Source of the DNA: Paragordius varius
Lineage: Eukaryota > Animalia > Nematomorpha
Assembly (NCBI GenBank): GCA_964247055.1
Contig: OZ176057.1
Location: forward strand, 4,092,001 to 4,156,000
DNA: 64,000 bases
Direction of reading: 5' to 3'
Both the position numbers and the translations under genes were made by a program. The notes under the pieces are model-generated. The model was not told the origin of the DNA. It saw only the letters and a list, made by a program, of their open reading frames with translations, and searched no databases. This document shows positions 8,029 through 63,175 of this stretch, piece after piece. Numbering within the stretch: the stretch's first letter is position 1; each line of letters opens with the position of its first letter.

Positions 8029-9149
8029 ATGCAAAAGAATACGCCAGCCCAAAATAATTCTGAAGGCCTGAATAAGTTTCCATCAAATAATCATGCTGTT
8101 TCAAGCTCTGATAGATCCCCTTTTTGGAAAAACTTAAGAGAGGAAATTAAAAAAATCGGGGAAGATGTATCAGGAAAATCTTTAACGCGCGAAAGCAAAC
8201 GGTCAGAACCTGATATTGCTATAGATGGTTTACAATACGGATTCAAATCACCCCTCCAAATGTTAAACCAAAACAATGGTCAAAATATTTCCAACGTATC
8301 GCTTTCTTCCGATAGTACCGATTCAAAATATGATCATACGCATGAAAAAGATGTGAAAAGTAGCGAAGATAGTATAAATGAAACAGATCCTATGTTATCC
8401 GCTAATACCTGTACTATTAATGATAACAACAACAAACAGATTGATAGGCAAAGAACATCACTCGAAACTCGAAAAACACATAAAAATGGCAACAACCTCA
8501 ACACTTTGTCATCTCGTACGAGTTTTCCCTTTTTAGGCGTCACTATTGGTAAAGGAAAACAAAATTTTGCTATGTTACGGAAATCAGATACTATCCGTAA
8601 AATACCCAAAAAAAGAGTTTTTACCTATAAGAGGGGAAGCAAAAATGATAAGGACTCTGTGACATATCAACAAACGCATGAACCAAGAACTTGGACCCCA
8701 GATTCTTATAATGATTTTGACGGGAATACAAGAAAATCAGGTGATGCAGAAACAGTAGACTCCATATCTATCTCAAAAACATTAGGTGCTATAAAAATGA
8801 ATCCATTACTCCATAACAATAATCATTTAGTTCATACAACTAGTCAAAACAGTTTATCCAATAATCCCAATCTCAATGCCAATATCAATTCCAAATATGG
8901 GAAAGCATCCCACATAAATTCGGGAAATACCAATAACACAAACAGTAATAGTAATTCAACGCTTTACATGATGTCCCACCATGATAAGAATGTGGCAACA
9001 GTCAAAACTTACATTAAATCCGTCTTCCAGCCTGCGGATAATAAGCTTGCGATCAAACTTTTTGGGTCTAAAAAGGCCGTCATGCAAGAACGAATGAGAC
9101 AAACCCAGTCTGGGCACAGTTGGGTCATACACCCCTGTTCACATTTCAG
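8029..9149 (+). CDS. HCN: HCN exon 1A: long low-complexity N-terminus plus HCN domain
   Basis: ORF ends [41 protein letters not shown](R); donor AG|GTAAAT at 9150, phase 2, matching the acceptor at 24221 (AG+A=R, then FYWD). In-frame stop just upstream of ATG 8029. Confidence 0.92.
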
Positions 9150-12100
9150 GTAAATTTTGTATAATATATGTTACATAAACGCTAAAACTGAATTATATAC
9201 AGTCGTGCTTGTCTTCAAATAGTGTTAATACCTAATGTTCAAAATCACTAAATTTATATATACAATTTCTATTCTACAGATTGCTTTAAATTGTCAATTA
9301 GGTTGTCTATTCTTCATTCTACACTTGATATCATTATTTCAAGGTTACTTAATTACTGATAATTAACATAAAAATTTTACCATTTTATTACATGAGTAAG
9401 TGAGAAATCATAATTCTCACGGGATTAATGATTTTTGCTCCATAGAGCTAACGTAGATGATCAATATATTAACTTATAATTAATTAGGAAATAGTAGATA
9501 AGCGAACCCAATTATTATAAAGAATCGACATCGTTAACATATTTGAAATATAATTTTAATTTATTTTTGCGTTAAACATATATTTTAACACTAATTTAAT
9601 ACACCCTATCTTCTTAGTAGCAAAATGCAAAGTAGACTTAAAATTCAATATATCCATTTACACTTTGGAATCACCCTAAAATAAATTATGGATTGTTTAA
9701 GATAAAAAATTACCTAGATTTTTATGTATTCTTAAAAATTTGTTTAAAATCAAAATAGTACTGAAAAAATAATAAACAAAGCCATAAAGAATTTTATATT
9801 AATATTATTGTAGCCTGAAAACACATAATTTATTTTTAGTGGATTTGAATTGTTCAACGGTGAATTTGAATGAGGGGGAAATTGAATAATAAATGGTATA
9901 TTTTAGGGGGAAGCAATATATTATTTTTTCTTAAATTTATATGGTCTATTTTGGTATAAAGAATTTTTTTGGCTTAAACAATATGTCGGTTATATTTGAT
10001 CAAAAAATTATTTATTTCTAAATAGCTTTTTTAATCGACAAGTTTCTCATCCAACATAAATTATTATTTTTTATATAAAAGATTTTGTCAACCTATATCT
10101 GTGTATAGTAATTAATAATTACAGTTATAAAAAACGGTCAAATTTAACCATTCTTAAATGTAAAATTTTGATGTTTTTAGTTTTGATATGTGCACTTACT
10201 TATTTATTTTAACTATTGTTTTGCTTAATACTGCATTAATTTTTATTTTTTACGAAAGAACATTTTGGGGTATTTTTTACCCCAGTTAAAATAAAAAACA
10301 AACTACTGTTTTGAAATTGTTGTGGTCAATATTTTATCAAAGCCTGTTCTTCTGTTTTAAATATACCAGTTTTTCTTCTACAGTATAAGATAGCTCCAAT
10401 CGAAATAAACTACCTTGATATCAATGAATATCAAGTCTTTGCTGGTGCTACCTGAAAGCTTTCTATAGTTAGTTTCCAGTTTCTAACCATAACATACATT
10501 TATTTACCAGTTATATCAATTTCAAAAAATTTATGGTGGCATAAATTTGAGGTGATTTTATTTACAATTTCAAGTTTATAAAATAAAATTTTGTATCATG
10601 AGCCCAAAAGCCAAAAAAGGCATATTTTTAATTTTGCCTCAATGATGAAAATATGAAGATATTTAAATTTTAAATCGCTCCGTATCAAACTACCCCAAAA
10701 AGTCATGTGTTTATCTGCCAAGATAGCATTTGTGAGAATTGTTCTTTAAAAAAAGATTCAAAAACCATTTTTTATTCCAGTTACACAGTTCAAATACCTT
10801 TCATATATTTTTATTTTAATAATGGAGATTAAGAGAAAACGATTATCTTATATTTTTGATGTGTTAATTATATTTAAAAAATTTGACGTATACGCTGCTA
10901 TCTGTTTAGACGCCCTATATAAGTTCTAATTAAATATTTTCTTGACAAATGTGATAATATATAATAGAGATATATAAACTTTACTACGTTTCATATTATC
11001 ATCATGCATTCGGATATTATGATCATTGTCCGATAATTATAAAAAGAATTTGGGAAAAATTCAACAACCGATACCAATAAAATATTTGGCTAGGTTAAAT
11101 TTGAACCAAAAAATGCAATTTTGCGGTATACGATCATATTTATCGATAAATTTATCCATATAATATTCACTAATTTGTATTAATTTATACAACGCTGATT
11201 ATGAACTTTTCCATAGAGTTCGATGAAAAAAAACGTCAAAAAATCATTTTTTTAGATTTAGGAATTTTTAAACCCCGCTAATTTTGGCTATTTAAAATAA
11301 AATGGAAAAAAAATTATATAATTATATATTTTGTCAATTATTATTGATTAGCATTAAAATCAAAAATCTTACTCTGAAAAAAGCGGTGCCAAATTTTTTA
11401 TATAAAAGAGCTGAAATGGCAATTTTGGGGCTACTAAACCTATATTTATCAAAAATTCTATTTTTTGATCATTTTTTTCGTGTGGATCTGCATATACTTT
11501 ATTAAAATTTAAAAACTTCCAATGATTTAGATCAGAGGTGTTCACTACAAATAGTTTCACGGGCCGCAGTTTCAGCTCAAAAATATGGCAGCCATAGAAA
11601 AAAATTATAACAAATAACCACAGTTGAATATATTTCTGTGGGATGGAAAACCATTCAAGAAGTTAAGTTTATCATCGTGTCAGGTACCCTACCTGCCACA
11701 TCATGACCCTTTCAGAATGTTAATTAAATTAAATAGATATAATTCCAAATATATCATTTAAAAATAATATTATAACGTAAATCATGTAGATTATTTTACT
11801 ATATTCATTTAAGTTAATTTGTTTAATTATAAGCCGACAAAAAATTTTGGAGGGCCGCATGTGGCTTTCTGGCTGTGTGTCCGGCGCCCCTAGATATTAT
11901 AGCTGTTTACGATAAAAATTTTATAAAAAACTATTCTGTTAACCACTTTAAAAATTTTATTTTTTAAAGGTGTTGTTAATGGTCTAAAAAAATATTTTTT
12001 TTAGGAAGTTTTAAATAGTCATTTAAGAGATTCACCGAAAATATCGCGGGAAGGTTTGACCGCATACTACTTTTATTCACTTTTGGTTTTGGCCCTTACG

Positions 12101-15100
12101 GGTATTTTATAAAAGTTATCAAAAATTTTGTCAGCTTCATCTCAGAAAATGGCATAATTTGCTCACATCTTGTTAAATTTATTTGGTGAAAACTAAATGC
12201 TTCATTCCTAAAAATATCACTAAATTATATAATAAACCACACATTAAAAGCATGGTAATATTATAAAATTTTTATTTTTAGACGTAGGCCCTATCCTTAT
12301 TTATTGCCCTTCTAAAATAGGCTAGTTCTGGTGTAAATAATTACTAAATGGTTTGTAGAAGCTAAAACCAAAAAGACCATGATTATTCTGATACATTTTT
12401 CATCAGAACAAATTTTAAATTCACCGTTCGGACGCAACGCTATGCAAAGTTTTTGATTGACTATATTTACCTGAATTGTATTTAATATATTGATTGAAAT
12501 ATTGAATGTAATGGCTGGTCAATAGTTTTAACGCTGTTTTGATTAAATTAAAGCGTTTAATGTGAATATTTATTGGTTATTGGATATGGTATATATTCAC
12601 AGAGAAAGTGAATATAATCGAGATTCTCGATAGTATTTTGTTGCAAATACTATTAATCATGATAAAATAAAACAAACAATTCTGATTTGGCAAAATTATT
12701 ATTCTAATGAGCAATAAACAATTTATGACATAAGAAAAAAAATGCATAATTTGTTATATTATATATATGTATAAATTTACATAATTTTGCCAAATCTATT
12801 TTACATTATGCATAAGTTATACATTACTTAGTTGTGAAGCATCAAACCAATATTCCAAAAATCAGAGAAGCTATGAAGTTTTTGAAAAGTCATAACTGTT
12901 TAAAACAGACATGTTTATAAACTTGATGTTGCACCAAAAACAAATTTTGTACGATTTAAGAAAAGAAACAGAAATCAGATAAATTTGATTAAGAAATTCT
13001 TAGATATAAAGAAATATTCAAAGATGTATCTCTTAAAATATTCCTAGCAACCTGAAAATTGGAGAGGCAAAAAATTTGCCAAGCAAAAAAAACCCAAATT
13101 GATTTGCACACAGCCGTTTTTTTGTAAATCTTTATGTGTGATAACACTTTTATGTATTGATTCTCAGATACCTTATTATTTTCTTTTATAGTATAAAATT
13201 AAATTAGAGACTGCTAATTAAAATAGGTGGGTGTGTATTTGGAATTAATCCAGCTATCAAAATTAATACACTTAATTAAATGGCTGATTTTTATTAAGAT
13301 TAAGATTATAATGTATGGTAAACTAATTTTCTGATAAGAAACCACGCTATGATATCAAACGAATATTTTAGCAATATCCCAACTTGGACTCATTTCCAAT
13401 CGCAAAAACAAAAATTTAAAGTTTCACCCACCGATATTTTCTATGCCGTCATTTATAACATTAAATCAATACCAGATTAATTTATTGATTTTATCTTTTG
13501 ATAAATATATGTTTTAACTTTTAGCATTAACATCATAATGTAAATAATAATTATTTATCGTTGTTAGATAAATATTTCGATACATTTTGTAATAAAAACA
13601 ATTAATGTATAATGTTTCATAAAATATTACATGATTTATGTGTGATTTTATGGTGGCATCATTTATTATTGATTTCAAATTATACCATTAATATGTTCTT
13701 TAACTTGTGACATACGTTTTGATAAAAAAATATTTAGCATGTGGATCGTTTTCATAGCCATTTAAAGGCCCTAATAATTCAACTAAGTAATTTGTTTCAC
13801 AAAGCCAAATAAACCAAAAAAACGTTTTCCAAACTGTATGTTGAGTTAGCCTAAATCAATACACCCCATCATGTACAAGATAACTAACAAGAACTTTAAC
13901 GATTCTAATTCTAAAATGAATATCAATACAAATATCCCTTCCAACATAATGAATAGTAGTGATAAAAAATACAATTCTATAATCTATTCCAAAGGAGCTA
14001 ATTGTAGTTTTAGCAGTAACAGTAATAATCCAAAATTTCAATTTAAAGATTATTTGCACAATCTTTTTATCCCAGACTCCACGTCCCGTGTTACCGTTAA
14101 ACTTTTTGGGAGCCAACGGGCCTGTCAACTCGAACAGGAAAGGCAAACAGCTTCGGGTTTTAAATTCATAATCCATCCTTTGAGTCGATTTCGGTTTCCA
14201 TTTTTTTCTTTATAATTTTTTTATTAAATATATATGTACATATTGATCTAATTCGTATAAACTCTGAAAGTATTCTATCAGATTATTTTTAACCTTTTGG
14301 GGATATTTGCGGTATTATTTTTTAAATGCAAATCGGCTCAACAAATAATCCAAACAGCTTAAAACCAATTACTTAAATATTACATGATCGAATCTGTATA
14401 ATTATTTTCAAAATTGGTAATATGATCAGATAAACACATTTAAAATTTCTTAATTAATGTAGGAAATATCGGTTTAATATATGTGTTTTTTTGACACTTT
14501 GTGACTTTTTGGGGTTAGTTTTATACCCCAGAGCTATATAATTTTAAAATTTTTATTGGGCCAAATAATACAGACTCTTTAACCTTTTAGGCGCATACAA
14601 AAATTTTTTCTTAACTAATATAAAATTATTAAAAAATATATCCTAATTCGCCGCCATTTTTTCTTTTATTATTTTCTTTGTATTGTGGATACAACACATA
14701 AAGGACTGTATATTGGTTGAAGAATATAAATAATTAATTTTGGAAAGCATTCAAATTTCAATTTAATAGTAAATTTTTGGTATTTATTTTTATATCAGTT
14801 TTTCAATAGTGCTTTGGACCTATCTGAACTTAGGACTTTAGAAGTTAAAAACTGTTAGAATTAAGTATCTAATACATAAGAAGAGGGTTTGTTAATTAAA
14901 TTTCCATGCAACCTGCAAAACAGTAGTGTATTTACTAATTAAAACTCTGAGATCGAAATTACCCAAAAATATCGTTGGGGACAAAAATATAAAATGAAGT
15001 TAAAGTATTTGCTTTATAAGTTTTACGATTTATCTCTATAAATTTAAATTTTACCGTAATTGAACCTAAATCTGTTAATTATGAAAATATTATAGTTTTA

Positions 15101-18100
15101 AACTAATTTGGAGCTTTCAGTTTGACAAGAAATTTTTATGTGTTTATTTAACGATTATGATTTGAAATTATTATTATTATTAAATGACATAATTTTCAAT
15201 TTTCCAGCCATCATTGTTAATATTTTATGTTTATAGAACCGTAATTGGTTTTAATACACAATATACATACAAACTGCTGGTGAAAATTCATTGTACAAGA
15301 ATCCTAAAAGAGTTCATTTTTTGGCAATAACTTATATGGCTTTCCTTGTCATATTTTAGGTATACTTAAGAACCAGTACAAAAACCTTTTTATTACTAAT
15401 ATATTGAATTTAACGTATATTTTATATTTTTAAGGCAATAGCTTGTTTCTTAGGTTTGTCTTAATTTTTTACTTTGACGGTGTTTATTTTATCGATTTTA
15501 GCAACGAAATTACAGAAAATGATTATCATTAACCAAAATTGATATGAATTTTATTTTTTACAAATATATTGTTAGAATATAAAAACTTTAGTTACATCAC
15601 TAATAACTATAATTAAATCATTTATAATAGTTGCTCTTTAAAATAATCATTTTACTAGAATTATATAAAAAAATTTAACTTTGATGCTATTTTTAATATA
15701 TAAATTGTTGTTTTTAAAATTAAATAATTTAGCTAAAAACTTAACCTTAAATTAAAATATTAAATAAAACATGGATACAATTTAAGCAACCAAAAATTAA
15801 AACCATTTTTTAATGTAAACTATGTTATAAAAAATATAAATATTAAGCAAATTTGGTTTAAATATAAATAAAATATAGGGTGTAAAATTTACCGAATTGT
15901 ATAGCTTCCCACCATCTAGAGCAGTGGTACTTGCCAAAAAAATTTGACGGGCCAAATAAAACATATTTTTTTTCGATATGAACCTTATAATGGCAAATAT
16001 TCCATAGCTATTTGGACACATACGCACATATTTTTACTCTAAATCAGCACAATGAATTTTTTGCGGGTCGCATGTAAATCCAGCTAAAAATTCGTGCACC
16101 ATTTATTTAAAAATTAAAATATTTTGATAACAACATTTATTTAGATATTAACCAATATTTTTTGACAAATTTGGTTTCGCCTCATGGCAGGCCAATCTTA
16201 ATACGCCGTCCATATGATCATTAGTTAAGCGATTTCGGTATGTATTCTTGAGAGACTTCATTTTTGATATGCCGTCTCACACGTGTAAGTTGATGGAAGT
16301 TAAGATAACTTGAGCACATTTTTTTATATTATATTTATTTGGCACAACTTGCCAAAACTCTACATATTTTTCTTCTCTTTGATTTTCCTTATAAATAGCT
16401 TAAATTGGAATTTAAAATCAACGAATTCTTCAATGATAAGCGCCTGATCAAAACCGAAAAGCTCAAGTTGCTTAATGTTGGAAATATCCATATGCCATGG
16501 ATCTTCAACGAGTTTTAAGCAATTTTTAATATTTTTTAATTCTTGAAATCTGAATTTCATCTCATTAGATAAAAATGTTAAATGATTGTCTATTATTAAA
16601 TTAATATCCGCGGTAAAATCCATATTTTCTTTACAATTGTTTTAAGTGTTGGAAAATGTAGGAGTGTTTTATCTATAAAATCTTGTTTATATATTATTAA
16701 TTTTTCTTCAAAAGCAAATATATGATTAGCAAATTGGGTTATTATTTTGCTCCCTTGAAGACTTGTATTAAAAGTATTAATTTTATAAGTAATGTCGCAA
16801 ACGTAGGCTAATAAAACCCACCATTTGTCACTATTAATTTCCTCGTCAAACTTTCTGTTATCTTTTATAAATAATAGAATATGTCTTAAATCAAAAAATC
16901 TATTCAATACTTTGCTAAGACTTAGCCATCTCATAGCGGTGTACAAATATCATCAAACTCACTGTATCTTTCAGAAGGTTTTTGAATTTACGGCGATTGA
17001 ATTCGCTGCCACGGATGTAGTTAACTATATCCACAACCGTTTTAATTACTAAATTTAGTGATTCATCTTTTACAAGCGAAACCAAATTTTGCTGATGAAT
17101 AAAGCAGTGAAAGGATAAAATAGTTTGTAAACTATATTTGTTTTTAAAAAGAGGAATAAATTCTTTTATTCCAATCATAGAGGGACAGCCATCGGTGCAG
17201 ATCGAAACTTTTTCATAAGTATACCATTACTATCGAAAAAAGAGCATTATTTTGAGACAATCACTTCTTTTTGTGGTATTATTCATTGGTAAAAATTTCA
17301 AATATTCCTTGTTTATGTTGTCGTTGCGAAATCTCACGAAGAGCGCACATTGAGGTGTTGAGCTTATATCAGTGCTAGAATCAATTGCAATACTGAAGTA
17401 TTTGCAGTTTAGAGCCAATAATGTTTTGTTAAAAATGTATTTAGACATATCTTCAATGCGTCGATAACATGTTGAATCCGAAAGTTGAAGTTTTTTAATT
17501 TGCCTCATGATTTGATCATTTATCAAATAAAAAAGTGCAACCATTTATTAGACATTCTTTTATTAGTTGGGAATCAGTAAACGGTTTCATATTTTTTCCT
17601 AAAATATAGCAAATTTCATACGAAGCTAATGTTACAGCATTTTTCTGAGAAAAAGCTATGCAATAATGGATTTTTCTTTCTCTTGTAATTCCTTAAAATT
17701 TTTATATTTTTCGTTTCTTTCCTCATGATTTTCTGGTAATTTATGAGAATGATGGATTTTAAAATATCTTTCAATATTGTATTTTTTTATAATTATGTTA
17801 TTCTTGCATATAAGGTAGGTAGCAACATTGTTATTTAAAACGACAAAAAAATTATTTTCCCATTCTTTTTTATAGGAGCGATTTTCATCGGATAATTTAC
17901 GTTTTTGGGCATTAGATGTCATCCTTTGAATTTATGTTTAAATATGTAAAAAAATAGGAATATAAATTGAATTATGCTATAAAAAACAGGTCAAAATTCA
18001 ATGGTGTCGAAATGAAAAATATTTTATGGGAATGAGTTATAAAAATGATGCAGGATAGCAATGAAATGTATGTGCAATGGGTGAAAACAAAAAAAGAAAT

Positions 18101-23270: not shown

Positions 23271-26200
23271 TTTGCAACCTTAATCTATAAAATGCAAAAA
23301 TATATGTCGTATTTTAAGTTTTTTAGAGATATGAGGCGACAAATCAGTAAAACCAAACATTTAACAAATAATTGTAAGCGACTAGATATCTTTTAAAAAT
23401 AGTATTTACATATCCAATAAAATAATGATAATAGAAATTCCCAGAATAAAATGACATCTAACCAAAATTTTTAAACATTGCAACCTTATATTATATATAT
23501 ATATAAATATGATTTTTAAAAAAGATATATTGTAATGCTTTGTTTTTATATTTGATACTTTTATATTTAGCCATGAACTTTCAAGAAATTTTGCAAAAAA
23601 AATCTCTTTTGTGGTTAATATAGTGGTACTTAATAAGATTTAGTATTATTAGATGTCATTGTCGTATTTTTTGAGTGTATAAATTTGGATTAATATCTTT
23701 GAACGTTTTAAAAAGCAGTTAATTTAAAAATTAATATTCTAATCGAAAAAATGTCGTAACTATTGAAAAAACAGTATGTTTCAAATTATTTTGGTAACAT
23801 TATTTACAATAAACATATAAATTGATATTTTATTTTACTTTGTTTTTCGATTGACTTTAACTTTTACCATTGTTTAATATTTAATGGTATCGCCTGACAG
23901 TAATAATTTACGAGATTTCGCTGGAATAATCTTCGGTATAATTGTATTTTAGACCTGTTAGCTAACGATACTGCCCTTTTTCATACTATAATTATAAATT
24001 TGCATTGGTGGTTATTTAAAACGTGCTTACCAAAAATTTTTTGAAGGGTAAAAAAAGTATATTTTTATTGTTTCAAGGGCCGCGTACCACATATTACCGA
24101 TACATAACTCCTTTTACTTGCAGATATTTATAATCCAAATAAATACATATAAAAAATAAAAATGAGTTCAGGTCTTTTAAAACCACGACAGAAATTTACA
24201 CATATATAAATAAATTTTAGATTTTATTGGGATGTATTCATGCTATTCCTACTTGCCGCAAATCTCATCATACTGCCAGTTACTATAACCTTTTTTAACA
24301 ATGACCTCAGCATTTATTGGCTTGTTTTTAATTGCTTTTCTGATACAATGTTCCTATGCGACATAGTGGTTAACTTTCGTACAGGTAAGAATTATGTTGG
24401 GAACTAGGGGGGGGGGGTTAAAATTATTTTTTTTAAAAAAATTTATTTTTCATAAAAGTGTTAAATAAATTAATGAAACAAAACGATATATATCAAATAA
24501 TATTTAAACTATATTTGCGATGAGCGTGAAACAATGCTAAAAAGTTAATTTGATTTTTGACATATTAATTATTTTGTCAAATGTTTTTACAAATATTAAA
24601 ATAATTTTTAATTATTTTTGTTCATAAAATATTAAATGTTAGATAGCCAAAATGTGTTGGAAAAAATATGTTTTTTCTATTAAATAAGTATGATTAACTT
24701 CCAGGACCCTAAATATAAAAACTAGAATTTGAGATAGAATAATTGAAGTAAACGCTATATTAATTTTATAAAAAATAAAAAACACCAAACATATTGTTTA
24801 GTGTGTAGGATTACAAAACTCTTCAAAAAACATAAACTCTTATTTATAAAATTATAAAATATTATAATTTCATATGAATATAAAATTTAACTTTTTTGAC
24901 TGAAAAATCAGATTTTTGCGATTTATATAAAGAAATGGAAAGTTTGGCAGAAAGTTTTATGATGAGGATTAATTTTTTTTTTAAATTATTAAAATATTAT
25001 ATGATAAGTGCGCCTAGAATCCATATTTTAAACTATAATCCAATAAAATAATTTTTTTTAAGTTATTTATATTTGAATTTCTTGGAGCCAATTATTGCCA
25101 AAACAACCAAACTGTAATCCTATTTTACATGCTTTTGGGTTTTGTCTTACTTTCTGAAATCAAAATTTTTATCAAGCTAAAATATTAAGTGGGAACTTTT
25201 CAATCCTTAATATATGTTAACTTATTCTATACAGATTATTTAAAAAAACTATTTGTAATAACGAAACCAATGTCTTATCGATATTTATCTCATTCACAGG
25301 TATAATGCCAGAAGATAAAACTGAACACATAATATTAGATCCAAAAATAATAGCACGTCATTACGCTAAAACATGGTTCATACTTGATTTTTTAAGCTCG
25401 TTTCCTTTCGATTACTTTTTGCTCATTTTCAATCCATACCTCATCCAAACGGATGGCCACAAATTCCAAATGATACAAGCGGGCCGAGCCCTTCGTATCC
25501 TACGCCTAGCTAAATTGCTTAGCCTACTTAGGCTTTTACGGGTTAGTCGATTAGTCCGTTATGTTAGCCAATGGGAGGAAGTCTATGTAAGGCTTATAAT
25601 ATTGTGATTTTGATTAAACAAAAGTAATTAAATATTTTTACAGTAATAGTTGTTTATAAAGCTAACCATAAGATTAAATTGTTTATATTAGAAGTATTTA
25701 GTTAGCAAAGATTCTAATCATCTAGAATAGGGGTGTCGTCTAACGGCCCTCCAAAATATTTATCCAGTCTGTGAAAATTCAATATATACCAAACACCAAA
25801 TCTTATAATTAATAAAGGGTATTAAAATCTTAGTAAAATTGATATTTCTTGAACAAGTTTTCTGGATAACGCTTTCCAGATTTCGGAAAAAAACGTACGA
25901 AAATTGTTTTTACAAATAGCAAATATATTGGATTCTTAATATTTACATTAGCTTGAAATGTCATAATTTTAATGCTCATATATTTATCAAATGCGAAGTG
26001 CTCACTAAGCGATTTGAGTTGGACACCCTTGTTTTAATATATAAAAAAATCCAGGACCAAAAAATATGTTTTAAATGTATAATATTAGTTTTAATGTATA
26101 AAAATCTGATGCTTTTTCAGTTTTTGAACCTGGCCACAGTATTTATCCGTATCTTCAACCTCGTAAGCATAATGTTACTCGTGGGTCATTGGAGCGGATG

Positions 26201-29200
26201 TTTGCAATTTCTTGTGCCCCAAATGCAAGGTTTCCCTCATGATTGCTGGATAGTCATAGCTAATATAGAGGTATATCTTTTAAACTCCATTTCAATTTTA
26301 TGAAATTTTAAACGAATAATACAAGTGGTTCTGAGTTTGATAAATATTATTTTCATTTGTGGTTTTCTGTATTTTTGAGGAAATGGAATCAATTTTTTAA
26401 CAACTATACGATATATTCGCCCCATAAATTATATAGAAATACTAAAAATATTGTTAAAATTCTACCAAAAAAATGCTCAAACGCCTTTTTTAATTCCCTG
26501 GACATATTTTTTATAATCGCAATTTAATTATCCTTTGGCTCTTAAGGAAAAAATCAGCCCCCAATGTTTTTTTCTAAAATTTACAATTCTTAACTTAAAT
26601 AAATTTTATTTGGGACATATCCCATGTTTCTCCTGTATTTACTTATACCTGTTTCCGATGATTACATATTTTCCAAGTATCATTTAATAATGCTTAGAAA
26701 TCCGATTGGTTCGAGCAATATTCCTGGTCCTTTTTCAAAGCCATGTCACACATGTTATCAATTGGTTATGGACGTTTTCCACCCCAAAATTTGACTGATA
26801 TGTGGCTTACGATATTCAGTATGGTATCTGGGGCAACGTGTTACGCACTTTTTATAGGACATGCCACAAACCTTATACAATCACTTGAATCAGCAAATCG
26901 CCAGTATAGAGAATTGGTATGAATGTGCATAACATTTTTTTTTCATAATGATTCGTTTTTAATAACCTTGAAAGAGAAAGTTCATAGGCAAAAAAACACA
27001 AAGTTACCCTCTTCACAATAATTAAACACAAGGCTTGGAACCGGAGCCTGCATGGAACCGGAACCCTGTTCCTGGGATTTTAATAAGAACTTGTTCCATT
27101 GGTATGAAACCAACGCGGTTCCGGTTCCACTTGTTCAGGAACCAACCCGGTTCAGGTTCCACTTTTTTTAAACCGGTTCCAAGCCCTGATTAAATAACAT
27201 ATTTTATTGCATAAATTTCGTTACTTAATTACTTTTTTTGACTACCTATTTATTACTTTTTATCTTTAGATGAAACAGGTGGATGAATATATGGCGTATA
27301 GGAAGTTACCCAGATCGCTAAAAGTTAAAATCCAAGATTACTTTGAACACAAATACCATGGGAAGATGTTTAATGAAAGCATGATATTACGCGAACTCTC
27401 AGACACTTTAAGGCGGGTAGGGTTATATATATATATACATGATTACAAATTTGTAAATTGAAAATCATTATATAGTAGGTATATCGAAATTCAGTATACA
27501 TAATATAATGATTTATTACATTCATATCTCATTTATTATAAAGTATAGCATAATTAATACCGAAACACATATTTTTTTCTCAATAAAAGGCTGTAGTTAA
27601 TCACAATTGTCGCGAATTGGTAGCAAGTGTCCCCTTCTTCGCAAATGCCGATGAAAACTTTGTTAATGCCATCATCGGTAATTTGGAATATGAGGTTTTC
27701 CAACCCGGAGATATTATTGTTAAAGAAGGCGCTCTTGGTGACAAAATGTATTTTATACAAGAGGGTGTCGTTGATGTTATTACAGGAGGGGAAATAAAAA
27801 CGTCGCTTTCGGAGGGTTCATATTTTGGAGGTATTATACATGATAAAAATTAACATTTATACGAATATAACTTAATTTGTTAAGGGCGGAAACGCAGAAT
27901 ATATTATTAAAAAAATGCCCCATGACTATAAGGTATTTGTGTAGGTTAACGAATTTACTTAAGAACAAAATATATTTTTCCAAAATATGTAATAATAAGA
28001 AAATCTTTTTTTATAACCTATTTTGTAATTTAAATTAATATAACATAAAAAGATTGTTTTATCATTTTAAATAGCGATTTTGTCTAAGTTTAAACCTGGG
28101 GCGCTAAACGCAAATGACTTCGCAACCGCATTTGAAACATATATGGATTCATACATATAATAGATATTTAACATTTGACTAAAGAAAATATAATATTTTT
28201 TTTCGTAGGCAAAGTCATTTAGAAAATTTTTTTAAGATATATCAATTTTACCAAGATTTTGTGAGCATTTTGCAAATTATGGATTTTCAATTTTGGCGGG
28301 CGCACAAGAAGTCTCGGATCACCCCTGATTTAAACAATAAAAGGAACTGATTTATACAATAAAAGAAAGTGTAAATGGTTAAAAAAGGTTGCTTAGATCA
28401 TGTATTTTGGGTTGTCTAGAAATACTAATATTTGTTTTTAATAAATCATAGTAATAATTTAACAATATACTACAAATATAATTTTTTCCAGAAATTTGTC
28501 TCATGACAAGTGATCAAAAACGCCAAGCCACCATTCAAGCAGCTAGCTATTGTCATTTGTTTTCGCTTTCACGTTTACATTTCAATCAAGTCCTTGAAAA
28601 CTATCCCATGATGCGAAAAACGATGGAAAGTATAGCTGCTGAAAGGTTAACTAAAATAGGACGAGATCCAACTATAGTATCTCCTCGTGAAGATTTAAGC
28701 AGTTACTTAGAAACCGTTCATGAAGTTCTTAAAGCCAAAGAGAAAGAAATTTTAGCATTACAATCGGCAGCTGCAAGCATAAATTCATCCAATCATAATA
28801 CATTCTCTTTTGCATCCAAAGGCAGTACCGGACTCATTATACCTAAAAATGAATTATTAGTCGGGGGAAAATCACCTTTCACCAGCAACGCAGGAATTGT
28901 TAGCAACTCTGGTCTACTTTCAGCATTAAATTTGAATCACTATCTTAATATAGGAAGTATTGGGAAAACGCCCCTTAACAATATAAACAATCCATACCTC
29001 AAGCATAAAATGAGTCATAATTTGACCGCCCCATCGCTAGCTCTTCTAATGTCCAATGCTAATCATGGTAATGATGCTTTAGGTTTTCACAAATTATTTC
29101 CTTTCGCAAATTTCGATGCCGTATCACAGCAAAATTTAGAAGGTGAAGATAAGGAATTGATGGCGGATACCAGAAAGTCACAATCATCCACAAAAGAGGA

Positions 29201-29948
29201 AAACAACTCGGAACATTCTATATTTTCTTTGGGAAAGCTAAAAACAGGCAAGGATAAAAGTAAACGATTTGGAGATACAAATAAAACTTCTTCATCTGGA
29301 GCCAATCTTCCAAAAAATCTATTGACCGTACTTCGAAAGGGTACTTCGGGTTCCATTAAGCGAAGTTCTAGAAAATCTTCGCTTAACCCAAGACATTCGA
29401 CAGTCTCTAGCTCCGTGATTGAATGTATTGGCTCGGGCAAAAATTATGATGAAAGCTCTCAAATTGTTAATAATTTCAGTCAGAATTATGAATCACCTCA
29501 GGACTTTGCAGAATCAAAGACGAATTCAACACTGTTACTCGCAAATGGACCAAAAAACGATACATTTATATCTGGTAAATTTTTTAAGGCTTCATTATTT
29601 AATCAACAACCGCTAACCAAGAATCTGGTGAATGTATCAGCGTCCGCCTTATTTCCGCTCCTTATCTCTACGTCTAAAGAACCAGCCATTCAGGATACAC
29701 AAAAAACCGGAATCACAGAATGTTATAACAAAGATTCCGAAAAATATATTACGGGACAAAATTTAACGCTTGAAAAAAGTATGGAACATCATCATTTTTG
29801 TTCCGAAAATAATTTATATAATCTTAACACAAACAATGAGAATGCTAACAATGCAAACAAGTCATTCGCTAACCAAAGCATTATAAACCCTTGTGGTATT
29901 CAAATTATATTTTCACCACCAAGCACTGAGAAATTAGTCCAAAATTAA
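8029..29948 (+). CDS. HCN: HCN / Ih hyperpolarization-activated cyclic nucleotide-gated cation channel (spliced; ~1261 aa with exon 1A, ~995 aa with exon 1B)
   Basis: Exons 8029-9149 (or 13871-14193), 24221-24384, 25300-25586, 26121-26270, 26698-26916, 27270-27416, 27590-27830, 28492-29948 join in frame via GT-AG (3786 nt). They give the HCN domain (KLFGSKK...[12 protein letters not shown]), S1-S3, S4 ([26 protein letters not shown]), pore ([11 protein letters not shown]), C-linker and CNBD (SYFGEICL...AAERLTKIG). Confidence 0.96.
9654..9896. mobile_element. Small foldback-type MITE with ~20-bp tandem GGGTGAATTTGAATTG repeats (family of 34708-51610 and 18836-19062)
   Basis: CCATTTAC...AAATGG termini in TA context; interior matches the reverse complement of 34810-34980. 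Confidence 0.6.
11533..11892. mobile_element. Degenerate hAT (Charlie/Buster-like) MITE
   Basis: CAGAGGTGTTCAC left end, GGGCCGCATGTGGC subterminal motif, ...GGCGCCCCTA right end; no clean TSD. Confidence 0.45.
13871..14193 (+). CDS. HCN: HCN alternative exon 1B: second, divergent HCN-domain exon
   Basis: Encodes [43 protein letters not shown](R), colinear with the end of exon 1A. GT donor (CG|GTTTCC, 14194) at the same codon position and phase 2; the donor is weak. Confidence 0.75.
15922..18310 (-). mobile_element. Decayed full-length hAT transposon (Buster/Charlie/SPIN-like, GTF2IRD2-type transposase) in HCN intron
   Basis: TIRs CAGTGGTACT / AGTATCACTG; flanks ATCTAGAG / ATATAGAT (6/8, nTCTAGAn-type target); 2.39 kb. 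Confidence 0.85.
16200..17922 (-). pseudogene. Frameshifted hAT transposase
   Basis: Fragments: [24 protein letters not shown] (BED-like), [62 protein letters not shown], and [25 protein letters not shown] near 16200-16310 (dimerization domain), split over several frames. Confidence 0.88.
18836..19062. mobile_element. Foldback-type MITE, same family as 9654-9896 and 34708-51610
   Basis: cacccttaaacaattcaaattcac left; gggtgaatttgaattg...aactgtaaat right; shared interior. Confidence 0.6.
19513..20081. mobile_element. piggyBac-like MITE (~570 bp)
   Basis: TTAA|CACTT ... AAGTG|TTAA, with subterminal inverted ttcgattcaaattggggta / taccccaatttgaatcgaa; copies at ~6986 and ~55604. Confidence 0.75.
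22802..23065. mobile_element. Tc1/mariner-like MITE
   Basis: TA|CAATAAAAA ... TTTTTACTG|TA; homologous to 2111-2390. Confidence 0.65.
24221..24384 (+). CDS. HCN: HCN exon 2 (S1-S2)
   Basis: ttttag|A TTT TAT TGG GAT = (R)[54 protein letters not shown](G), donor g|gtaaga. Missing from the ORF track because of its size. Confidence 0.95.
25300..25586 (+). CDS. HCN: HCN exon 3 (S2-S3 loop, S3, S4)
   Basis: cattcacag|GT ATA ATG...; [28 protein letters not shown]...[14 protein letters not shown]; donor gtaagg. Confidence 0.95.
25728..26031. mobile_element. hAT MITE in HCN intron
   Basis: TAGGGGTGTC... left, ...GTTGGACACCCTTG right; TSD not matched. Confidence 0.5.
26121..26270 (+). CDS. HCN: HCN exon 4 (S5)
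   Basis: tttttcag|[50 protein letters not shown]|gtatat; 150 nt. Confidence 0.95.
26698..26916 (+). CDS. HCN: HCN exon 5 (pore helix, selectivity filter, S6)
   Basis: cttag|[73 protein letters not shown]|gtatga; 219 nt. Confidence 0.96.
27029..27188. mobile_element. hAT MITE with GGAACC subterminal repeats (family of 35010-51542)
   Basis: TIRs CAAGGCTTGGAACCGG / CCGGTTCCAAGCCCTG; flanks ATTAAACA / ATTAAATA (7/8 TSD). Confidence 0.8.
27270..27416 (+). CDS. HCN: HCN exon 6 (C-linker)
   Basis: ctttag|[49 protein letters not shown]|gtaggg; 147 nt. Confidence 0.95.
27590..27830 (+). CDS. HCN: HCN exon 7 (end of C-linker, CNBD beta-roll)
   Basis: aaaag|[24 protein letters not shown]...[11 protein letters not shown]...KMYFIQEG...SYFG(E)|gtatta. 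Confidence 0.95.
28096..28327. mobile_element. hAT MITE in HCN intron
   Basis: CTGGGGCG... / ...CACCCCTG ends with flanks GTTTAAAC / ATTTAAAC (7/8 TSD). Confidence 0.65.
28492..29948 (+). CDS. HCN: HCN terminal exon (PBC, B/C helices, long disordered tail)
   Basis: ttttccag|AA ATT TGT = (E)[26 protein letters not shown]...[20 protein letters not shown], then S/N-rich tail to TAA 29948. Confidence 0.94.
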
Positions 29949-61829: not shown

Positions 61830-63175
61830 ATGTCAATTCATTCTCCAATTTTCAAAGAGATTTTGTGTATTTCATTTTAGAAAAAAAACTTCCACATAGA
61901 TAAGTGGACCCAAAAGCACAAATTAATCTTTGTGTAAAAATTTTTAAATTAGGAAATTTATTAAACGTTATATATTCTTTATAAAATTCAATTTTATTTG
62001 TTTGCCCAAATAATAATTTTAATTCATTATTGGATTGCAAATCTAGTAATTCCATTTGTAAATTAATAGGAGCGTTGATAGCTTCAACGTAGAACCAACA
62101 AAATAATTCAAATATTTTTCATATTTTGTCATATCCCCGTATCGATTATTAAAAGCTTTTGATAATATGTTAATTCGATCTGCATATTTTAAAAAATAGT
62201 TAGTTTTACCAGCTTTAAATCTATTCTTTGGAAAATGTTTAGCATTATTTATTTTTAAATGGCATTCAAATAACGTTAATTTTTTACAAAACGCTTTAAT
62301 ATGGTTATTCGCATCAACAATTAAATTATCTTGCTTTTGCAAGGATTTATTTAATTTTAGTTTTTCGGTAATATCTACGGAAAAACATAAATCTGACAAC
62401 CAATCTTCATTGGTTAATTCATTTACCAAATAATTATTTAATAAAAAATAAAAGCTTTTTAGACATTTCCCTCGACTAAGCCACCTTACATTTGAAAAAA
62501 TAAGATCTCCATATTCTGAACGAATTTTTTTTAATAACTCCATAAACTGCCTATGCTTCACTTTAATAACAACGGTCATAACATTGTCCATTGTCAGGGC
62601 ATGTGCGCATAGATTTTCATGAATCATGCAATGCATTATATATATATGGTCAATATTAATACCATCGGATTCCATCTTATTTAACAATAATTTCACGGTT
62701 CCCTTGTCCCATCATAGTTGGGGCACCATCTGTTGTCAAACAAGATAGCGCCCTCAATTTATTGTCCTTAATACATTTTAAAACTGCATGAAACATATCA
62801 TCTCCCTTAGTTGTATTTTTCATTGGAAGTAAGCCTAACATATCTTCTGTTATATTAAAAAATTCATCTATCCCTCGAATAAAGACTACCCATTGTGATA
62901 TGTTGCTTATATCTATGCTTTCATCAAATGACAAGGAAAACGCCACTAAATTTTGAAATCTTTTTTTAGGGAAAGTTGAATATCTTCTGCGATGTCTGCA
63001 ATTCGTCGACACATAGTATTGCGCGAAAGACTTATACTGGATATTAATTCAACTTTATTAGAAAACACATTTTATAATTTCCAGTACGCATTCCTTTACA
63101 AACTCACCATCAGAATAAGGCTTCATTTTTTTGGCGAGTAAATTGGCAACAATATAATTTGCCTTTACTATCGGA
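61830..63175 (-). pseudogene. Frameshifted hAT transposase
   Basis: KKMKPYSDGEFVKEC..ISLSRNTMCRRI, FSLSFDESIDISNISQWVVFIRG, LTTDGAPTMMG, HCMIHENLCA, VRWLSRGKCL, FGSTYLCGSFFSKMK spread over several frames. Confidence 0.9.

Follow-up and report, generated by a model that had tools for sequence, protein, structure and literature searches.

The question raised by this locus is whether one HCN channel gene can offer two different HCN domains, each encoded by a first exon of its own. The window, a stretch of 64,000 nucleotides (nt) of Paragordius varius (contig OZ176057.1), had been described in an initial annotation as containing an HCN gene with two homologous HCN-domain exons, here called 1A and 1B, that feed a single channel body. 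In the reading that we favour, to which a probability of roughly 55% is assigned, the window holds the sole HCN (Ih) channel gene of the genome, and two alternative first coding exons of this gene give rise to a long isoform with a canonical HCN domain and a short isoform with a divergent one. Exon 1A would supply a long N-terminus followed by a canonical arthropod HCN domain, and exon 1B, probably under its own promoter, would combine a short N-terminus with an HCN domain that has diverged strongly. Each first exon would be spliced from a phase-2 donor located in the same Arg codon to the S1 acceptor at 24221.

Both exons were found where they had been placed. Exon 1A (8029..9149, +) begins with an ATG and encodes an Asn/Ser-rich N-terminus of ~324 amino acids (aa), which is followed by the HCN domain at residues 329-373 (Pfam Ion_trans_N). 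The exon ends two bases into an Arg codon and belongs to an open reading frame (ORF) of 8029..9153 (+), whose 3' end carries the peptide quoted in the initial annotation. Its HCN-domain part (9001..9149, +) is of the canonical arthropod type as judged by its conserved columns and by its identity to arthropod-type exons, and the donor behind it reads GTAAAT (9150..9155, +; AG/gtaaat at 9149/9150). Exon 1B (13871..14193, +) lies 4.9 kb downstream of exon 1A and has its own ATG, a short Asn/Ser-rich N-terminus and a divergent HCN domain, and also ends two bases into an Arg codon. The 1B ORF extends from ATG to stop at 13871..14215 (+) and encodes 114 aa; the ATG at 13871 has an A at -3, and other in-frame ATGs are located at 13916 and 13949. 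The HCN-domain part of 1B (14042..14193, +) is backed by homology to 1A, conserved columns and GC content.

The identity of the two exons was analyzed with the Pfam family PF08412 (Ion_trans_N), which represents the HCN domain and has a cut-off of 27 bits. Exon 1A scored 75.4 bits (E 2.6e-21) and exon 1B 44.7 bits (E 1e-11), and in an alignment to the solved human HCN1 both covered residues 98/101-142. When the two proteins were compared by BLASTP they were 43% identical over 51 aa (E 3e-13), a similarity that is far beyond chance. The HCN domain of 1A reached its best identity (64%) with the arthropod-type metagenome exons L007, L015 and L053, and 1B has FGSQ.A...EQER in common with the vertebrate type, in agreement with the earlier assignment of 1A to the arthropod Ih type and of 1B to a vertebrate-like type. 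That 1B might be a chance ORF or an assembly artefact is suggested by nothing except its shortness and the low complexity of its N-terminal half. This explanation is already refuted by the Pfam and BLASTP E-values of 1B and by the presence of the 1B stretch in independent DNA runs from three studies.

The exon ends are compatible in frame with one common channel body. As the initial annotation had proposed, and as can be read in the sequence, 1A and 1B are both cut in phase 2 within the same Arg codon, and each can be joined to the one S1 acceptor, at 24221. The shared S1-S2 exon (24221..24384, +; acceptor ttttag at 24215-24220, donor G/gtaaga), the end of which had formerly been put at 24387, opens with A TTT TAT TGG GAT; its first base completes AGA (1A) or CGA (1B), both coding for Arg, and FYWD follows. 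The summed exon lengths are divisible by three with either first exon and correspond to products of ~1261 aa (1A) and ~995 aa (1B), sizes that represent summed exon lengths only, with the end of the S1 exon taken as 24384. If 1A were spliced onto the AG at 13848-13849, the frameshift foreseen in the initial annotation would occur and the frame would hit a stop after ~10 codons. Since tandem splicing of 1A and 1B breaks the frame and 1B has its own ATG, 1B, if it is used, is therefore a first coding exon.

The putative donor of 1B, GTTTCC (14194..14199, +; CG/gtttcc at 14193/14194), does not follow the consensus and has a T-rich stretch behind it, and it was assigned because no other GT would leave 1B in frame with the S1 exon. 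No further GT is present between 14186 and the stop at 14213, and an alternative in-frame donor for 1B was rejected for this reason. A U12-type intron was rejected as well, as GTTTCCAT departs from RTATCCTT at +3 and +7 and a TCCTTAAC-like branch site was absent within 30 nt of 24221.

The genome is small and AT-rich, and across its 110.5-Mb assembly only two matches to Ion_trans_N were obtained, namely 1A and 1B, together with one HCN body. Exon 1B is therefore not a fragment of a second gene, and a second HCN gene as its source was rejected. Within the window neither a second S1 exon, of which the first reading had seen none between the two exons, nor any other duplicated HCN exon was found, and 1B is separated from the S1 exon by a 10-kb intron.

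To judge the history of 1B, its divergence from 1A and its pattern of conservation were considered. Between the two exons the synonymous sites are saturated (pS 0.90; pN 0.45; nucleotide identity 45%), and the split of 1A and 1B is therefore old. About 110 genuine HCN-domain exons from many animals were retrieved from metagenomes with a hand-made IUPAC pattern, and 53 unique animal HCN domains were used to define 15 columns with at least 90% conservation and 35 less conserved ones. All 15 conserved columns are kept in 1A, and 12 of the 15 are kept in 1B, in contrast to 9 of the 35 less conserved columns (Fisher p = 0.00055). The conserved columns have thus been spared in 1B, and neutral decay alone does not fit. 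The GC content amounts to 42% in the 1B domain segment versus 25% in its flanks, and upstream of the domain the frame stays open for 64 codons that include ATGs, for which the local chance is 0.0013, measured as the share of positions in neighbouring intron DNA that reach 64 codons (0.13%). By its sequence pattern 1B carries the signature of long purifying selection and was clearly a coding exon under selection for most of its history, and on the same grounds it is judged to be neither a chance ORF nor an old dead copy.

Several points weigh against the favoured reading, and these come from the exon itself, from the sequencing runs and from searches in other animals. In the tree 1B groups with 1A, a placement that is not firm (support 91/74), and its branch has a length of 2.63 changes per site, compared with a median of 0.04. 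The domain is devoid of the NK of the DNKLAM stretch (the position of the export motif), of the Trp and of the Cys of HPCS, all of which are near-universal elsewhere. Its donor, TCG/GTTTCC, pairs with U1 only at -1 to +2 and differs strongly from the consensus, and an A at +3 is common to all of the gene's seven other donors (GTAAAT, GTAAGA, GTAAGG, GTATAT, GTATGA, GTAGGG and GTATTA). Run X5 has the same species label, stems from another sample and is 1-3% divergent; its haplotype swaps 13794-13936 (143 bp) for ~75 other letters, by which 1B loses its first 22 codons together with the ATG at 13871. The in-frame ATGs at 13916 and 13949 may serve as the start of 1B in this haplotype. Transcription of 1B was not detected in the runs at hand: all runs with the 1B stretch are DNA, and the RNA-like runs of the species do not contain its words. 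Run X7, which is guessed to be RNA, has no coverage on 8600-14400, and as 1A is equally uncovered this run is uninformative. Among 107 metagenomic loci on short contigs, only 7 of which reach 5 kb downstream and 9 upstream, a second HCN-domain exon on the same strand was found in none, which is weak negative evidence. Finally, a protein relative with a 1B-like N-terminus was not found in a search that was limited by its length filter and by database size.

Word searches with the 1B ORF, the 1A domain region and the cyclic-nucleotide-binding end of the last exon gave no candidates and are uninformative, owing to the length filter and to the small number of shared 5-mers. An exhaustive search with 1B among 1.8 billion proteins gave three repeat proteins and nothing else; in a set of this size a domain of 45 residues is too short to become significant, and isoforms are hidden behind 50% cluster representatives. 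When the alignment of 1A and 1B was used as a query against metagenomes, no relative was obtained. At L088:4698-5886 the minus strand carries an HCN-domain exon, of which a partial copy, 90% identical and with an unchanged intron start, is present on the plus strand where the contig ends; the pair reflects an inverted duplication or else an artefact of the assembly. In L013, L045, L081 and L103 an extra intron splits the HCN domain, with profile positions 2-22 and 15-51 on separate open frames.

The weakness of the 1B donor has to be seen in the light of the intron to which it belongs. The phase-2 Arg boundary before S1 is identical in 79 of 79 unique metagenomic HCN-domain exon ends, and the intron is therefore ancient. 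The CG/GT boundary of 1B coincides exactly with this ancestral position. At +3, T or C is present in 36 of the 79 metagenomic donors, which is far more common than in usual donors, and donors as poor as GTCTTC, GTCTCA and GTTTTA are in place at this intron elsewhere; GTTTGC and GTTTGA are among the further hexamers. GTTTCC is therefore odd for this gene but not for this intron, and it need not disqualify 1B. Weak donors that are followed by a U-rich stretch can be aided by U-rich-binding factors of the TIA-1 type, and by analogy the T-rich run behind 14194 could help the 1B donor in this way.

These observations also bear on the explanation that 1B is a relic, a formerly working alternative or duplicated exon that was disabled, for instance by loss of a proper donor, too recently for stops to have accumulated, so that only the 1A isoform is made. 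It would account for a GTTTCC that matches the consensus only at GT next to donors with A at +3 throughout the gene, for the extreme branch length, for the loss of several near-universal residues, for a 5' part with the first ATG that is polymorphic within the species, and for the failure to find an RNA run with 1B. Although it is the strongest competitor of the favoured reading, we hold it to be rather unlikely. A 121-codon open frame decays fast in DNA of 25% GC (see the chance of 64 open codons above), so that 1B could only have died very recently in relation to its long divergence from 1A. The conserved columns are kept far more than the variable ones, the GT sits exactly at the ancestral boundary, and equally poor donors exist at this intron in other animals.

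The poor donor, together with the complete ATG-to-stop ORF and an ATTAAA located just downstream of 1B, might instead be taken to mean that 1B stands apart from the channel body, as a free HCN-domain peptide of 114 aa (13871-14215) or as a separate short transcript. This is very improbable. The end of the domain coincides exactly with the ancestral phase-2 Arg boundary and its GT, and the tail after 14193 is not conserved within the species, as X5 contains an extra C behind 14200 that would shift the frame of the ORF tail. In DNA this rich in AT, an ATTAAA is to be expected by chance. Moreover, we know of no free-standing HCN-domain protein, which also counts against a free peptide.

With respect to the runs, it was further observed that X3 and X4, which are labelled as two other organisms, carry near-identical DNA at low depth. 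Because these sequences are near-identical, the two runs provide no cross-species test of 1B; we infer, and only infer, that such low-depth copies fit a parasite, a parasitoid or a commensal.

Returning to the reading with two alternative first exons, the position of the HCN domain determines what a choice between them would mean. The domain is wedged between the voltage sensor and the C-linker, and therefore the two isoforms would be expected to differ in voltage range, in coupling to cyclic AMP (cAMP) or in surface delivery, beyond a mere difference in a disordered tail. Variation of the HCN domain has so far been studied among paralogous genes or in engineered mutants, and the domain of vertebrate HCN channels was reportedly treated by Lee and MacKinnon in 2017. 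It connects the voltage sensor with the C-linker, which senses cAMP, and is required for surface expression, and in HCN1 the residues F109, R112 and I135 anchor it to the voltage sensor and the C-linker (PMC6894927).

When these three positions were mapped by alignment, F109 corresponded to Leu in 1A and Val in 1B, R112 to Lys in both and I135 to Ile in both. Like the vertebrate domain, 1A and 1B are thus hydrophobic at F109 and basic at R112, and both retain Ile at I135; judged from the alignment the anchor positions appear conservatively filled, and both domains would be predicted to fit the same site. The domain of vertebrate HCN1/2/4 is, as here, a segment of ~45 residues directly before S1 (Porro et al., 2019, PMC6894927). 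It varies among four paralogous genes in vertebrates, whereas here it varies among exons of one gene, and unlike the vertebrate domain 1B carries Val in place of F109 and Leu in place of Y138, and it is without the NK of the VNKFSL export motif. It is suggested, tentatively and with considerable doubt, that promoter choice swaps a structured gating module and that a 1B isoform with Val at F109, without NK and without Trp and Cys near the S1 loop differs in voltage range, cAMP coupling or traffic.

Drosophila melanogaster Ih (DmIh, FBgn0028428) resembles the present gene in several respects, as it is a single HCN gene and combines a long or a short N-terminus with a common S1 exon (here the predicted products are ~1261 aa for the 1A form and ~995 aa for the 1B form). 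Splicing of DmIh leads to long (125 and 170 kDa) or short (71 and 73 kDa) N-termini (PMC4382183), and the S1-S3 exons 7 and 8 are common to all isoforms (PMC3344876). Both papers are silent on whether the alternative 5' exons each encode an HCN domain of their own. The DmIh isoforms are backed by cDNA and Western blots, whereas 1B is known from genomic DNA alone. The initial annotation knew of no such arrangement elsewhere. With regard to long and short N-terminal isoforms this has to be qualified by the Drosophila case (PMC4382183, PMC3344876); a literature search on alternative HCN-domain exons found nothing.

A second comparison is offered by the mutually exclusive exons of arthropods, for example those in sodium and potassium channel genes, which like 1A and 1B are tandem, homologous and of the same phase, with only one usable if the frame is to be kept. 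Unlike those internal exons, the pair described here would consist of first coding exons with their own starts, the choice being made by promoter use, and they share no more than 43% identity and differ greatly in length. N-terminal Ih isoforms and homologous alternative exons are each of an already known kind, and the interest of their combination is moderate until a junction read is seen.

If the favoured reading is true, the gene would provide a natural pair of very different HCN domains on an identical body, with which voltage range, cAMP shift and trafficking could be tested. It would also illustrate by what means Ih is diversified in animals that have just one HCN gene. If, in addition, the 1B isoform differs in function as tentatively suggested above, the gene would amount to a natural domain-swap experiment on voltage-ligand coupling. 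Should the same duplicated exon also be present in flies and bees, their long and short Ih isoforms would have to be re-read as HCN-domain variants.

The remainder of the channel follows the S1-S2 exon on the same strand. The S2-S4 exon (25300..25586, +) and the exon with the pore (SIGYG) and S6 (26698..26916, +) were assigned by Pfam Ion_trans and by reading of the sequence; the S5 exon (26121..26270, +), the C-linker exon (27270..27416, +) and the last exon (28492..29948, +) were assigned by reading of the sequence. Ion_trans matched on three exons of the body, and S4 has R/K at every third residue. The exon with the cyclic-nucleotide-binding domain's first part (27590..27830, +) was recognised by Pfam cNMP_binding, which scored 31.2 bits on 27617-27850 (cut-off 27.5). 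By eye, the pore (26743-26760) reads SIGYG in place of the usual CIGYG, and in the binding domain (28500-28560) the cAMP-contacting RTA reads RQA, with one extra residue nearby. The affinity for cAMP may be altered. ORF runs that resemble pieces of hAT-type transposases are located at 16360-17922 (-) and 62043-63012 (-), the former within the 10-kb intron that separates 1B from S1.

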